Of a DNA stretch of 64,000 nucleotides, positions 14,116 to 59,012 are shown piece by piece. Each line of letters opens with the position of its first letter. Within the stretch, counting starts at the first letter, position 1. The position numbers and the translations under genes were made by a program. Where the stretch lies: the NCBI RefSeq assembly GCF_963853765.1, contig NC_088857.1:12028001-12092000 (forward strand), read 5' to 3'. This stretch comes from Magallana gigas. Lineage: Eukaryota. The notes beneath the pieces were generated by a model. That model was not told where the DNA came from. It searched no databases and worked only from the letters and a program-made list of their open reading frames with translations.

Positions 14116-17082
14116 TCATTTGCATTTCAATCTTACAAATATGCATCATGGAGATAAGCATCGTACTTTGATTTATTTGATTGACAAATGGGTTACGGAT
14201 ATTGCTCACACTAAAGAAAGCCCGGTTTGCTGTCTAATTGCTGTCACATTGACAGCTTTGTTTTGTTTCCTACGGTGTGTTTGTTTGTACGATGAACTGA
14301 TAAACCATTTCTTTTTATACTCTTGCATATACATGTACTCTTATAAAAATTAATTAAAAAATTGAGAAAGACGTAAAAAGAGTTTCCAAAGAGATATTTA
14401 CATAATCAAACATACAACAGGAAATGTTTGCAATCTTCGCTGGCCTTATTATTCCAGCAAAGACTTTGCCAATCCATCAATATAATGCAGTATTTGGATG
14501 TCCATTTCTTTAGGTTAACTTTTGATGACTTGTTTAAAACATGGGCTTATGTATCAATATAAATTCTTATTTAGAAATTTCCAAATTAAAAAAAAACCCA
14601 GCACATCTTAAACAATACAACTTGATCACCAGTACACAAAACTTTTAAAGCTAATTTGTAAATAAGTAAATTACTAATAGCTAGACAATAAAAGCAGAAA
14701 AACTAGACAGTGTCCGTTATCTTGTCTTTATCACGTAGGCAATTGTTCTTTAAAGCCCTCTTTTCTCGATAAATGTTGTTAAATAGTTTCCCCACCTACA
14801 TCCTATTTCGGACAGGAAATCATTAAGGCCCCCTATAGATACATGTAACACGATAGTCCTGTGTTGAACATCGTCTTGAGATGACAAGGGGCAGAAGGCG
14901 ATACTTTGTCTATCTCTTTATCTCTTGACTCAAACTACATCTGTGACATCCCTAAGATCAATGTATCATGCATACGCAAAAAAAAAAAATAACTTTACAT
15001 AGTAAATTCTTAAAGGTTAAAACTCCTCTATAAACTAAAAACATATATTAGAAATAAAATAAATAAAAAAAAACCACTTTTGGTATTTTGTAAACAAACA
15101 GAAAATTTTATTATGTTTTTAGTATATATCGAGGCATCAACATATCAATGATATTGATTGCAGGGTTGTCCCTGTATGCATACTTACAGGCGAATGTTGC
15201 TAATACTTTTTCAATTTACTTTACAGGCACCTCCAATCCAACAACGACTGCGGTACCAACCAGGTCTTTAGTTAGTACAAGTATACGCCTAATCTGTTAA
15301 AAAATAACTATCTAGACTTTGCAGTCTGTAATCGGGTAATTTGCATATTAATTACCATGTGTTACATCGATTTGTAATCGAAATAAATCATAAATACCCA
15401 ACTAATGACCTTGTTTTTAACACGTTAATTGAATGGTTAATTTTATATTATATGAATATTTATTTCTCATTTACGTCACAATGACTGTACACTTAAACAA
15501 ATCAATCCGCTTGATTGTCATTTTCACATTGTAGAATCGTTGTTTTTTTATGATCTCGTTCACAATTTTTCAATATAACTTAATTAATAGACTTGGTTGG
15601 AACTCTTTAACACTTCTTTTTAGATATAAAGTTCATGAAAATCATTTCTTATACATCAATTCTAAAAAAAACCCCAGTTTTTGACGTCGAATGCATGTGC
15701 CCATTCACTCGTCTTATGCACATCACACTGGCATACAATATTAAGTATGCTATGACTGATTGTTTCATCAATTTGCTTTCAGAAAAAAGCCATCAATCTT
15801 TTGAATTATGTAAGGATATCTGTTCATTCTGACACCACAAACCAGCTGTGCAAGATCTTCTGAGAACATCACTATTGACAGCTCCAGCCTCTTTGTGCGA
15901 ACAAACACTGCGCTATATTGGTTACCGTAATGGAAACCAAGTGCTTATGACCGCTCTGGAAGGGTAACAGTTTGGGGTCCTGGTCGGCTGTCAAGCAACT
16001 AAAGTACAGTTATGCATGTAGCGAGGAGCGGACACGGATGCAACCGCAGGACAAAGGTCGTTTTAACCATTTCTCTTCTACAAAGATGACAAAGGTCAAA
16101 ACTGGTTAAGCTTATATAGTTGCAACTGATATAATTTAAACGTCATATCCATTAGAACATATACGTTGTCTTATAGACAATCATAGCCTTATACACTAGG
16201 TAATTAATGAATTGATTGCTTGTTAACGCTACCTTAAGCAGCAAATACTAATATCTTACGAATTTGTACAATGTATAAAGTCTGACATATAGGACACAAG
16301 TATAAGGTTAATTGATCAGATCTGTTGTCCCTCCATGCGTTACAGTCAGTAATGGGAGAGAAAAGCTGAAATTTGGATTGCCAAAATTGTTGAAAGGAGG
16401 ACAGGGTGTTTTGATTTTTTCCTTTAAAAAACCTTAGTTAAAATGTAATTTGTAAGCTACTTCTTAACAATCAAGACAGTACTTCTTAGCAAATTTAAAT
16501 CATTTGTCAATCATATCGAACATCAATGTCTTTTGAGTTGAAAATTGATTTTTCTACATATTTTCCGTCACTTCAAATAGATTGTCTAATGTATTTATTA
16601 TGACAAAATAATCGACATTCTTCTATTTAATATTTTACAACACTAGCTCCAGATTAGAATACAGTAAACTAGAAGTGCATGGACCCAATAACCCCTCGAC
16701 TGTGCATGGAGTACAAGACCGTTGCTACTGAGCAATGAAGATGTCGTGACAATTAAAGGTATGTCAGGCTGAATTATGGAAGACGACTAGTAAAGTACGT
16801 GCCGCCAATTACGTTCAGAGATTAAATACTGGGCAGTAAATCTTACTTAAAGTCTGCTCATAGCAAAAGCCATAAAACAATGTCAGACGTTATGCAATAT
16901 CAAAATAAAAATCGATGTGTTTCTTCATTGCTTCTGTTAATAAAACGACGCTCTGTCTTCATGAAAGCGCATCAAATAGTGTTTCAGTCATAATTCTTCA
17001 AACATTAACATGTCTAAAATAACAAGTGACAGAGAAAGATATCAAAATAATTTTAGTATTTTAATTCATATATATAACTGAA

Positions 17083-17884
17083 TTATATCTTTGCTTTTTG
17101 TGAATAAAAGTGACAATTATTAATTAAACTTCGATGAAAAGTCATGGTTGCTTGGATACACACATCGCATCCCCTAGTTAGCTCAAAACATAGTTGATCA
17201 CATCTACCCGAAGTCTCCCAAGCGTGAACTACGACCTCTTCATCCACCAAAGCCTCGTTTTCGTACCTTATCTGGAACTCCTTCAACCCATTTTCAACGT
17301 TCTTAATTAAAAGTCTGCTAAATAGGTTCTGGTCTAGACCTTGTTTGCAGACATTCATACAAATCTGAACATAAGCAAGCCAGTTGGTGTGGTTTTGGCT
17401 GTCAATGTCCGATGTTTGAATCTTGTAGTGGTCTATTGCCGCGCATATATCGGGTCGGCGTAATTTTTCCATAACAAACGAAGAACCAGTACACATAGGG
17501 CCATACTTTTCTCGCCAAGAAGGGTCGAGTTCTAGAGGTTTTCTGGTGACCGGATCGATTCTGATGTTTTGCTGAAACAGTCTTGCAAACCATTGCATAT
17601 TGAATTTATTTTTGATTTCAAGCATTTTGCAATGCGAACTTTTCCCAACGTACTGCAATGTAGTGTAGCAGTCAAATGGTAGATGCAAACAAGATGACGT
17701 GTAAAAGCTTTGGTGAATTTCCAGTTTACTTGAGGCAACGTATATAAATTTGTCAGCAAAGGCCGTTTTATTTTCGAGATAGATATTGGGATCTCCTGGC
17801 AAAGATGCATCATTGATTTGCATTGATAAGTCAAACAGTCGAAGAAACCGTAGTACTGGAATGTGCTTTCCTGAAAAAAAAAAA

Positions 17885-17934
<50 letters not shown>

Positions 17935-18107
17935 CGTCGAGGTATCAGTCAATTTGTCAATGAAATGTTACATTCCTGAGATACATACTGCTTGAATCCG
18001 GTGAGCGATCATCAAACAGGTCTGAGACACCTTTTGGAAAATGAACGATACATGTGGATCCGTTGATGGTGCGGCTTAATTTCAGTTGTGTTCTGATTTT
18101 ATGTACA
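17083..18107 (-). CDS. Double-hotdog acyl-ACP/acyl-CoA thioesterase-like protein, array copy 1
   Basis: Exons 17989-18107 (119 bp, VHKIRTQLKLSRTINGSTCIVHFPKGVSDLFDD) and 17083-17870 (788 bp) join in phase 1. Motif SDIDSQNHTNWLAY resembles the D-x-D-x-N-x-H-x-N-N-x-x-Y motif of FatA/B-type acyl-ACP thioesterases. C-terminus KAKI. Start codon not located. Confidence 0.72.
17892..17931. repeat. (GA)n microsatellite in the intron polypyrimidine tract of copy 1
   Basis: About 20 GA units; a degenerate equivalent lies at about 26655-26690 in copy 2. Confidence 0.95.
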
Positions 18108-57277: not shown

Positions 57278-57619
57278 ATTATATAAATAGTGCCTGTTTG
57301 GGAGGGTTACAGTAGAAATTGACACCCCGAGGAAACCATTGTCAACCGACGCGAGGGGTGTCAATTTCAACTGTTATCCTCCCAAACAGGCACTATTTAT
57401 TTTATTATACTGAATGTCTTAATATTAGAGAATTTTTCACTGCTTTTAAATAGAAATGACGTGAGTTCTACGCCAAACAGTACGCGCATAATTTACGCGC
57501 ATGTAACAATTCGTTGTGTTACCCGTTGCTAGGTGTGTTGCTAACGCTGAGGGCGATAGAACGGATTATCAACTGTGTCTTAACCAATCAGATTTCAGTA
57601 CTTAACATGAAAGTATAAT
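57278..57619. mobile_element. Hairpin-type (Crypton-like) non-autonomous element
   Basis: Insertion relative to the empty site ctaatattaaaaaatatg at about 45212; long internal inverted repeat at about 57285-57400; no clear TSD; same family as 12139-12460. Confidence 0.75.
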
Positions 57620-57757
57620 AATAAAAAATATGATCTCTGACCTCATGGTATACGATATAAATGAACAAAATTGAAATTTATCCAAACAAATTTAGGCCAA
57701 TATAGAGTTTATGAATTAGTACATAAGGCCTATAAGAATAATGAGAATGAGAATTAA

Positions 57758-58231
57758 AGAGGCATGGTCACGATTTTGGTCAAAAATTATTTTTTCGATT
57801 TTAATGTTTAAAATGCTTCAGTAAGGCATTTTTAATAGGCAACTAAAATTTGAGTGTCATTTGGTGAGTTATAAGCGAGTTACAGAGCGAACAATTCTTT
57901 GCAATGTAAACAAAGCTTTTGTTAACATTATGAATGTTGAAGTGAAAATTTCCAGTTTTATACCTAAAACGAATGTATTTATCGTTAGGAACTGTTTAAT
58001 TATGCTTTAAATGAATAATCAGATAGACAAACCAGCTTGAAAAAGATTTTTACTGGTATATTGAGCCTATGTAAATAAAACAGGGCACGAGCCTTGTTTA
58101 CATGACGAAGAATTGTGAGCCCTGTATCTTGCTTAAAACTCAAAGACTGGGGCCCAAATTTCATTTTATAATTAGAAATGCATTCCAAAACCAGAAAAAT
58201 AAAATTTGACCAAAATCGTGACCATGCCCCT
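57758..58231. mobile_element. Kolobok-like MITE with TTAA target-site duplication
   Basis: 27-bp TIRs AG(A/G)GGCATGGTCACGATTTTGGTCAAA; TTAA at 57754-57757 and 58232-58235; single TTAA at the empty paralogous site 45350-45353. Confidence 0.9.
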
Positions 58232-59012
58232 TTAAGAATAATTATACGAAAAACTAAGTTGATAATTCTGGTTTAAAGTGCCTATCCTTTCATTTCTTTG
58301 CATCATTTGAATCTTGCACCCAAATACAATCTTAATTATTTTTTACTTACTACTGGTATTAAATGAATAATAATCAAATTTAGAATTGTGAGACCTTACC
58401 AAAGATTGTAGAACATAACTTTAAAATCAATGTGAAAGAGGGTTTGGATATTGCAAAACATACCACACCCTGCTAAAAGGAACAGATAGTCTTAAAGCAG
58501 TAATCCAAATATACAATATACTAGGAATTTCGATAGAACCTGTAAATAATGCATCACGTTTGGTATTAAAATAACATGGATTGAGTATTATAAAATAAAA
58601 ATATTTCATTCAGTAATGAAAACAATATGCAATATCCAATTTTTCATTCATGATTTATTATCAATCACATACCATACCTTGATATAATAAGTCAGTAAAT
58701 CTTTAGTCAAAAGTTTGATATCATAGTGTGGAACCAAATAATACATGGCTTATACATTTTGAAAATTCTAACTAAGATACATTTTGCATCCATTTTATCT
58801 TTCATCTAATTTTGAACTTTCAAAAGACAAAAAATGACAAATGTAATATATAACATATTAATTCATGAATGCACTTCGCATGACTGAAATGAAGAAAACT
58901 GAATAATTTTATGATTTAATACTGGAAAAGTTTTGTTACATTAACCTGCATGTTTACTATACCAGAAACCCCAATTTCACCAGACTGGTTTTCCCCTTTC
59001 AAGGTTAACCAT

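Follow-up and report, generated by a model that had tools for sequence, protein, structure and literature searches.

Four tandem double-hotdog thioesterase-like genes with PTS1-like tails in the oyster Magallana gigas

Gene models of the four copies

The window analysed in this study is a stretch of 64,000 nucleotides from Magallana gigas (contig NC_088857.1, positions 12,028,001 to 12,092,000). It holds four paralogous open reading frames on the minus strand with 3' ends at 17083, 25839, 39454 and 48444, which are the same ends as those reported in the first-pass annotation. In the spliced models, every copy is composed of three coding exons, the last one exactly 788 nt long, with GT-AG borders at all introns, in agreement with the common exon structure and 788-bp terminal exon described earlier. 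The first coding exon is tiny (23-29 nt) and lies far upstream, at 19744, 30959, 41921 and 54065 in copies 1-4. The encoded proteins range over 305-311 aa, and the length of 297 aa previously given for copy 2 is replaced by 310/311 aa.

17083-19744, minus strand: copy 1, 310 aa, C-terminus -AKI (spliced model); exons 19744-19719, 18107-17989 and 17870-17083 (including stop); introns of 1611 and 118 nt
25839-30959, minus strand: copy 2, 310/311 aa, C-terminus -SKI (spliced model); exons 30959 (or 30956)-30931, 26902-26784 and 26626-25839; introns of 4028 and 157 nt
39454-41921, minus strand: copy 3, 305 aa, C-terminus -SKI (spliced model); exons 41921-41899, 40984-40878 and 40241-39454; introns of 914 and 636 nt
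48444-54115, minus strand: copy 4, 305 aa, C-terminus -SKI (spliced model and transcript contig); exons 54065-54043, 49978-49872 and 49231-48444; introns of 4064 and 640 nt
54115-54066, minus strand: 5' UTR of copy 4, at least 50 nt

The protein of copy 1 is 93-95% identical to that of Crassostrea angulata LOC128178928, copy 2 is 99-100% identical to C. gigas LOC117682581 and copy 4 shows 97% identity with C. gigas XP_011437329.1.

Organization of the array

The copies sit in a nested segmental duplication. Self-comparison of the window aligned 32848-45226 with 45527-57289 collinearly at 85-95% identity, and 20474-26560 matched both of these units at 74-83%, while 17133-18150 matched 25889-26943 at 84%. 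The genes thus form a tandem array of same-strand paralogues within collinear repeat units that are 74-95% identical, with stop-to-stop distances of 8756, 13615 and 8990 nt. The repeated units and their marker, noted earlier at about 15785, 21252, 32970 and 45655, were recovered at nearly the same positions; the 24-nt marker occurs four times against an expectation of 0 from 100 shuffles.

32848-45226: duplication unit with copy 3, its twin with copy 4 being 45527-57289 (collinear self-matches)
About 15.7-20.4 kb and about 20.4-32.2 kb: older, more eroded units of copy 1 and copy 2, respectively
15783-15806, 21252-21275, 32969-32992 and 45654-45677, plus strand: 24-nt unit marker (matches with at most 2 mismatches)
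50466-52604, plus strand: non-LTR retroelement with an intact 712-aa reverse-transcriptase ORF (RVT_1, E 7.6e-38)
37935-39294: 177-bp satellite, about 7 copies, directly downstream of copy 3

Intron 1 of copy 4 harbours the retroelement ORF, which is missing in the twin unit, the alignment of the units being interrupted from 50450 to 53591. The satellite is likewise missing in the twin unit.

Expression and selection

RNA-seq contigs from two runs join 40241 to 40878 and so cover the splice of intron 2 in copy 3, where read depth was found over exons 2 and 3 only and was zero across the intron. For copy 4, a 1008-nt transcript contig (L008) aligned as three blocks with exact exon borders at 96-99% identity. 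No reads of copy 3 were present among the approximately 1/100 of reads sampled from the poly-A raw-read run X21, a result which is neutral on expression. The dN/dS ratios between older pairs of copies (0.31-0.39) indicate purifying selection, and the ratio of the youngest pair, copies 3 and 4, is 0.68. Intact frames, spliced transcripts of copies 3 and 4 and dN/dS values below 1 led us to reject the view that these are pseudogenes.

In one RNA contig at copy 3, exon 2 is preceded by unrelated sequence which, in our reading, would place an in-frame TGA right before this exon. This single contig may represent an alternative 5' end or a chimera.

Fold and homology

The AlphaFold2 model (pLDDT 92.7, pTM 0.90) predicts a double hotdog formed by a single chain, with the TE14 thioesterase topology, as the first-pass annotation had proposed. 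In the Foldseek comparison, 44 acyl-ACP thioesterase chains came on top (E 2e-15 to 1e-12), followed by LnmK at 4e-10. Among the Swiss-Prot models, plant FatB and FatA were the top matches (1e-16) and the best animal match was ACOT7 with an E value of 1e-9, so that close orthology to a characterised animal enzyme, which would have spoken against the earlier proposal, was not seen. ACOT7 has the double-hotdog architecture in common with the oyster proteins.

The HMM search that had been suggested gave a similar picture. A profile of 89 family sequences reached the PDB entries 5x04 (6e-11), 2ess (3e-10), 9mqf, 7hqq, 8p8k, 4gak and 2own, whereas copy 3 used as a single query gave no match among the PDB sequences at E<=10; the solved structures are reached by the family profile only. 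Pfam 4HBT_2 was matched by 82 of the 89 family members and Acyl-ACP_TE_C by 54 at E<=0.01 (best 2.4e-10). The four window proteins themselves remain below the Pfam gathering scores (15-19 bits against 21 for Acyl-ACP_TE_C, 15-23 against 25.5 for 4HBT_2). The N-terminal TE14 model Acyl-ACP_TE (PF01643) had no match in the window proteins and one among the 89 members (E 0.0076), and NCBIfam returned a sub-threshold YbgC/FadM match only (20 bits against a cut-off of 68.7).

The TE14 class, which PMC3176148 assigns to type II fatty acid synthesis in plants and bacteria, likewise carries two hotdogs per polypeptide (FatA/FatB and bacterial enzymes; PDB 5x04, 9hrr, 2ess, 2own, 4gak and 9mqf). The family profile match spans the domain junction and the catalytic Asp, His and Glu lie at equivalent positions of the C-terminal domain; however, identity with the oyster proteins is just 11-16%. 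The YbgC/FadM/4HBT enzymes (4HBT_2; PDB 1njk, 1s5u and 5byu) are acyl-CoA thioesterases, and both oyster halves match 4HBT_2; the D-x-x-x-H-x-N-x-x-x-Y motif is common to the oyster proteins and this class. These enzymes are oligomerising single hotdogs of about 135-155 aa, whereas the oyster proteins are fused doubles with the motif in the second domain only.

A double-hotdog scaffold might also serve non-hydrolytic chemistry, such as acyl transfer/decarboxylation as in LnmK, condensation of the AfsA type or hydration like that of hydratase-2. We consider this unlikely, as such structures rank clearly below 33-44 TE14 entries, the family profile matches thioesterases only (TE14, YbgC, FadM and 4HBT-type) and the conserved motif is of the thioesterase type, D-x-x-x-H-x-N. 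The four genes are better described as part of an animal branch, so far uncharacterised, within the superfamily of double-hotdog thioesterases. Among solved structures its closest relatives are the acyl-ACP thioesterases of plants and bacteria, and it is reasonably probable that this description, together with the peroxisomal role discussed below, is correct.

Active site

17380-17412, minus strand: SDIDSQNHTNW motif with the conserved Asp and His, copy 1
26136-26168, 39751-39783 and 48741-48773, minus strand: the same motif in copies 2-4
17251-17268, 26007-26024, 39622-39639 and 48612-48629, minus strand: conserved Glu (R-Y-x-N-E-A) in copies 1-4

The motif is SDIDIQNHTNW in copy 3 and SDIDSQNHTNW in the other three copies, and it aligns without gaps with D-L-D-V-N-Q-H-V-N of 5x04. 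The SDIDxQNHTNW pattern pointed out earlier is thus present in all four copies, but it departs from the plant signature D-x-D-x-N-x-H-x-N and reads D-x-D-x-Q-N-H-x-N. Asp and His are conserved in 89 of 89 family members and Glu in 85; in P0002 numbering, D200, H204 and E249 form the predicted catalytic Asp-His-Glu network. These residues map to D281, H285 and E319 of UcFatB, which are tabulated among the plant active-site residues in PMC9659231 (Table 2).

The plant set Asp-Asn-His-Glu-Cys has become Asp-Gln-His-Glu-Ala in all four copies, the positions of UcFatB N283 and C320 being Gln202 and Ala250 (P0002 numbering). In the family alignment, Tyr (41), Asn (30) and Gln (9) are found at the plant Asn position, and Ser (50), Ala (13) and Cys (9) at the plant Cys position. 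From this alignment the two positions are unlikely to be essential here, because both vary across the whole family.

The same replacements might instead mean that full activity was lost and that the proteins bind acyl groups with weakened catalysis or with none. Their occurrence in 4/4 copies, when paralogues elsewhere in the genome retain the plant-like Asn and Glu-Cys, and the higher dN/dS of copies 3 and 4 would fit such a loss. The near-invariance of Asp, His and Glu, the family-wide variability of the Asn and Cys positions, the selection on older pairs and the transcription and splicing of copies 3 and 4 speak against it, and we regard it as very improbable compared to retained hydrolase activity.

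PTS1-like tail and likely substrate

17086-17094, minus strand: PTS1-like tripeptide AKI of copy 1
25842-25850, 39457-39465 and 48447-48455, minus strand: PTS1-like tripeptide SKI of copies 2-4

Both -SKI (three copies) and -AKI (one copy) fit [SAC][KRH][LMI] and the broad consensus of PMC8919083, where -SKI is given only as a 'predicted weak PTS1' for human ACOT6. In copy 1, the 14 codons before the tripeptide have diverged by substitution only and the class of the tripeptide is retained. PTS1-like tails are present in 78 of 145 family representatives (54%) under the broad consensus and in 53 under the strict one, against 5.6% in the zebrafish proteome as background (binomial p ~1e-57). Some family members of the same genome, for example those of a four-copy array on contig 2, are without any PTS1. 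These tripeptides are probably PTS1-type signals of weak strength.

Acyl-CoA hydrolysis in peroxisomes is the likely role because of the conserved PTS1-like tails. The fatty-acyl chain release of the acyl-ACP type proposed earlier thus holds for the ancestry of the fold, but probably not for ACP as the substrate. True acyl-ACP thioesterases, releasing chains from the ACP of mitochondrial type II synthesis or from the ACP domain of cytosolic FAS, would account for the best structural and profile matches, all of which are acyl-ACP thioesterases, and for the retained Asp-His-Glu network. On the other hand, the tails occur in all four copies and in more than half of the family, and peroxisomes are not known to contain ACP. 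On inspection, no obvious mitochondrial presequence is seen at the N-terminus; this end is predicted as structured strands, which from residue 16 on align with the beginning of the TE14 fold. Plant TE14 enzymes have a plastid transit peptide, whereas the oyster proteins end in a PTS1-like tail in an animal host, which makes acyl-CoA in peroxisomes more likely than acyl-ACP. Moreover, TE14 enzymes may cleave acyl-CoA as well (PMC3176148). We therefore hold an acyl-ACP substrate to be quite unlikely.

We favour, as the more probable account, a tandem expansion within the Crassostrea lineage which gave rise to four functional genes for peroxisomal double-hotdog thioesterases acting on acyl-CoA. 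As in TE14, the acyl chain would be accommodated by the N-terminal domain, the more variable of the two, and the Asp-His-Glu set of the better conserved C-terminal domain would activate water for cleavage of the thioester. The -SKI/-AKI tail would be recognised by PEX5 for import, and the substrates may be acyl-CoAs of the peroxisome, such as products of beta-oxidation. Such a job would be the same as that of ACOT8 and ACOT4, PTS1-targeted peroxisomal thioesterases; the peroxisomal ACOTs free fatty acids and CoA in this organelle (PMC8919083). In the older two pairs, the C-terminal hotdog is 78-88% identical compared to 58-62% for the N-terminal hotdog. Duplication with divergence mainly in the N-terminal domain suggests that preference for chain length or chain type has been diversified.

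Family distribution and significance

At least 14 family loci are present in this oyster genome, in line with the expanding invertebrate family envisaged by the first-pass annotation, and a Crassostrea-only clade has a support of 99/100 in the tree. Members were found in molluscs, amphioxus and a hemichordate, and a structural match came from a placozoan. Each named member is called 'uncharacterized' and our literature searches found no paper on the family in animals, as had been anticipated. The UniProt/InterPro class 'Acyl-ACP thioesterase-like C-terminal domain-containing protein' is the same family: amphioxus C3Z046 (Branchiostoma) matches the profile at 2.5e-27 and ends in -AKL, and the same name is borne by ESM Atlas clusters with 54-707 members, mostly from molluscs. 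It is an automatic domain label for which no function, localisation or publication was found.

Nothing found here exceeds a known kind of enzyme. TE14 thioesterases are prime tools for fatty-acid chain-length engineering, and an animal branch with peroxisomal import signals, which is transcribed, under selection and several times duplicated, would add a new enzyme class to the animal peroxisomal inventory and provide natural variants that differ in the specificity domain but have a fixed catalytic domain. A broader and more tentative idea, which at present we would rather doubt, is that an old animal family of TE14-like double hotdogs was recruited to peroxisomes, perhaps lost in vertebrate and insect models, and repeatedly expanded in molluscs. 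If true, peroxisomal lipid metabolism would have an undescribed arm that could decide which chain-shortened or unusual fatty acids exit beta-oxidation in marine invertebrates. For oysters, which are prized for their lipids, the genes would be concrete candidates for the control of fatty-acid turnover.

A sturgeon entry of 2893 aa, matched in part 36 times, was set aside on account of its source flag 'UNVERIFIED_CONTAM'. A word-indexed search with the 89-sequence alignment gained bivalve proteins only. A bacterial source of the many 'metagenome' members was rejected, as sparse genes and a LINE-type reverse transcriptase give their contigs a eukaryotic appearance, and many of these members carry PTS1-like tails.

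Gene structure and expression of the four copies

The window occupies 12.03-12.09 Mb of contig 5 in the 564-Mb assembly. An ORF scan of it revealed four long open reading frames on the minus strand, terminating at 17083, 25839, 39454 and 48444 (copies 1-4), and their nearest database relatives are Crassostrea entries of 305-311 aa named 'uncharacterized protein LOC...'. Upstream exons were located by mapping the proteins of these relatives onto the window, which gave each copy two additional short coding exons ahead of the last one. All the spliced models are intact, with GT-AG at every intron.

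Gene models of the four copies
Copy 1, minus strand: exon 1 19744-19719, exon 2 18107-17989, exon 3 17870-17083; 310 aa, tail -AKI
Copy 2, minus strand: exon 1 30956-30931, exon 2 26902-26784, exon 3 26626-25839; 310 aa, tail -SKI
Copy 3, minus strand: exon 1 41921-41899, exon 2 40984-40878, exon 3 40241-39454; 305 aa, tail -SKI
Copy 4, minus strand: exon 1 54065-54043, exon 2 49978-49872, exon 3 49231-48444; 305 aa, tail -SKI

The four-copy array reported in the first-pass annotation is confirmed by the gene models, motif, marker and repeat units, and the terminal exon of 788 nt which it had noted is exact in all four spliced models. Its length of 297 aa for copy 2 was wrong, the spliced model having 310 aa, or 311 aa from a second in-frame ATG at 30959.

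These copies are real genes. Intron 2 of copy 3 is spliced in RNA-seq contigs from two runs, which join 40241 to 40878, and the read depth covers exons 2 and 3 while falling to zero in the intron. For copy 4, a 1008-nt transcript contig aligns in three blocks ending at the modelled exon borders and jumps the 4.06-kb intron that bears a retroelement. The dN/dS ratio was found to be 0.31-0.39 in all older pairs and 0.68 in the young pair of copies 3 and 4.

A single RNA contig of run X2 carries, upstream of copy 3 exon 2 (at 40985, minus-strand transcript), 29 letters unlike exon 1, which by our own reading would place an in-frame TGA directly ahead of that exon. Such an extension could reflect an alternative 5' exon, transcripts of a paralogue or allele, or chimerism in the contig.

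Fold and relation to acyl-ACP thioesterases

Taken singly, copies 1-4 gave only sub-threshold Pfam matches, namely 4HBT_2 in both halves and Acyl-ACP_TE_C. An exhaustive profile search collected 468 clusters (50% identity) at E<=1e-3, 201 of them at E<=1e-10, and over the aligned members 4HBT_2 was matched in 82/89 and Acyl-ACP_TE_C in 54/89. The N-terminal Pfam model of TE14, the ThYme family of plant FatA/FatB and bacterial acyl-ACP thioesterases, matched just one of the 89. The family profile recognized solved acyl-ACP thioesterases (5x04, 6e-11; 2ess, 3e-10; also 9mqf, 7hqq, 8p8k, 4gak and 2own) and likewise the single-hotdog YbgC/FadM enzymes.

The AlphaFold2 model built from the family alignment is confident (pLDDT 92.7, pTM 0.90). 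In Foldseek its top ranks were 44 acyl-ACP thioesterase chains (E 2e-15 to 1e-12), followed by LnmK (4e-10), and the structural matches in the ESM Atlas were consistent with this result. The Swiss-Prot models most similar in structure were those of plant FatB and FatA (~1e-16), the top animal entry being ACOT7 (1e-9); no characterised animal orthologue was present among the sequence and structure matches. The predicted fold of the copies is thus a double hotdog with TE14 as the closest known family, and the model, the Foldseek ranking and the profile matches together support the thioesterase fold first proposed from the sequence.

Active site residues

The motif reads SDIDSQNHTNW except in copy 3, where it is SDIDIQNHTNW. 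It had been equated with D-x-D-x-N-x-H-x-N, which is one residue off, the oyster motif being D-x-D-x-Q-N-H-x-N. The catalytic centre of UcFatB comprises D281, N283, H285, E319 and C320, with an Asp-His-Glu network (PMC9659231, Table 2). Corresponding residues were read off the profile alignments to 5x04 and 2ess, which contain no gaps, and are given in the numbering of the oyster protein P0002.

Catalytic residues of UcFatB and their counterparts across 89 family members
D281: oyster D200; Asp in 89/89
N283: oyster Q202; Tyr 41, Asn 30, Gln 9
H285: oyster H204; His in 89/89
E319: oyster E249; Glu in 85/89
C320: oyster A250; Ser 50, Ala 13, Cys 9

Since the 5x04 alignment stops short of the Glu, its placement relies on that to 2ess, and taking E249 as the equivalent of plant E319 draws in addition on the plant sequence. 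Other paralogues of the same genome retain the plant-like Asn and Glu-Cys, and common ancestry with TE14 is therefore better supported.

Comparison of the two older pairs gave 78-88% identity for the C-terminal (catalytic) hotdog and just 58-62% for the N-terminal one. The acyl pocket which sets TE14 specificity is formed by the N-terminal domain (PMC5830452), and this divergence would be compatible with a diversified substrate preference, though it is not proof of it.

Family distribution

At least 14 family loci are present in this genome, including the following.

Contig 5, the window: array of four copies
Contig 5, ~14.52 Mb: a pair; the one member read has the tail -SKI and retains Asn and Glu-Cys
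Contig 5, 7.12 Mb and 14.97 Mb; contig 3, 23.24 Mb; contig 2, 44.26 Mb: single loci
Contig 2, 22888490-23086393 (22.89-23.09 Mb): second four-copy array, loci L003-L006

The copies of the contig 2 array keep the plant-like Asn and Glu-Cys (D-T-D-M-N-N-H, Y-L-G-E-C) and end in -FFS or -SLF, and hence lack PTS1, the C-terminal peroxisome-import tripeptide. Named family members were found in bivalves, gastropods, Branchiostoma and Ptychodera, and a Trichoplax protein matches structurally. TE14 has been described as plant and bacterial (PMC3176148). The claim that the family is uncharacterised in animals agrees with the annotation of the relatives as uncharacterized and with our literature searches, which found no paper on it in animals. 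The domain resemblance is already in the databases, as the automatic UniProt name of an amphioxus entry is 'Acyl-ACP thioesterase-like C-terminal domain-containing protein'.

C-terminal tails and probable location

All four copies terminate in -SKI or -AKI; the last 17 residues of copy 1 have otherwise changed, by substitution only, and still the tripeptide class is retained. Of the 145 family representatives with 190-450 aa, a strict [SAC][KRH][LMI] ending is present in 53, and 78 fit the broad PTS1 consensus (PMC8919083), compared with 2,638/46,848 zebrafish proteins (5.6%) in the same study (binomial p ~1e-57). The most frequent ending over all proteins retrieved was -SKL. As -SKI is rated a predicted weak PTS1 (PMC8919083), import may be incomplete.

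Peroxisomes handle acyl-CoAs, and thioesterases there release fatty acids and CoA (PMC8919083). Together with the PTS1-like tails this leads us to infer that copies 1-4 are probably peroxisomal acyl-CoA thioesterases of TE14 ancestry. Of the thioesterase claim made earlier, the TE14-like fold stands, whereas the tails argue against a chain-release role in fatty acid synthesis by a fatty acid synthase.

Duplication history and mobile elements

Self-comparison showed nested duplications in the window. The unit of copy 3 (32848-45226) aligns collinearly with that of copy 4 (45527-57289) at 85-95% identity, the copy 2 unit matches both at 74-83%, and the similarity of copies 1 and 2 is confined to the gene body (84%). 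Protein identity is 79% for copies 1/2, 90% for copies 3/4 and 63-69% between the pairs. The 24-nt marker of the repeated units, noticed at the first reading, was found at four places, with a chance expectation of none. In the maximum-likelihood tree, copies 1-4 and their Crassostrea orthologues form a single clade (support 99/100) nested in an oyster-only clade (100/100) together with proteins of Ostrea and Saccostrea; the duplications thus arose within the Crassostrea lineage.

Repeats and mobile elements in the window
10687-11811: degenerate 24/48-nt tandem repeat, ~23 copies, 61-64% matches; strong GC skew (-0.29) in the stretch
29235-30032: self-reverse-complementary block inside copy 2 intron 1, 81% over 820 nt, with 21/42-nt repeats
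37935-39294: 177-bp satellite, ~7 copies, immediately downstream of copy 3
50466-52604, plus strand: non-LTR retroelement, intact 712-aa reverse-transcriptase ORF (RVT_1, E 7.6e-38)
60480-61424, minus strand: 314-aa ORF with a GIY-YIG nuclease domain (E 8.6e-6)

Intron 1 of copy 4 hosts the retroelement in antisense orientation to the gene, and the insertion postdates the youngest duplication because the twin unit of copy 3 lacks it. The GIY-YIG ORF resembles the endonuclease region of a Penelope-like retroelement. The satellite is a further difference between the twin units, being found on the copy 3 side only. In RNA-seq contigs its word depth reaches ~3500 compared with 14-100 on the gene, and in a poly-A sequencing run its read orientation is strongly one-sided (198 vs 12), which suggests either abundant strand-specific transcripts or many genomic copies elsewhere.
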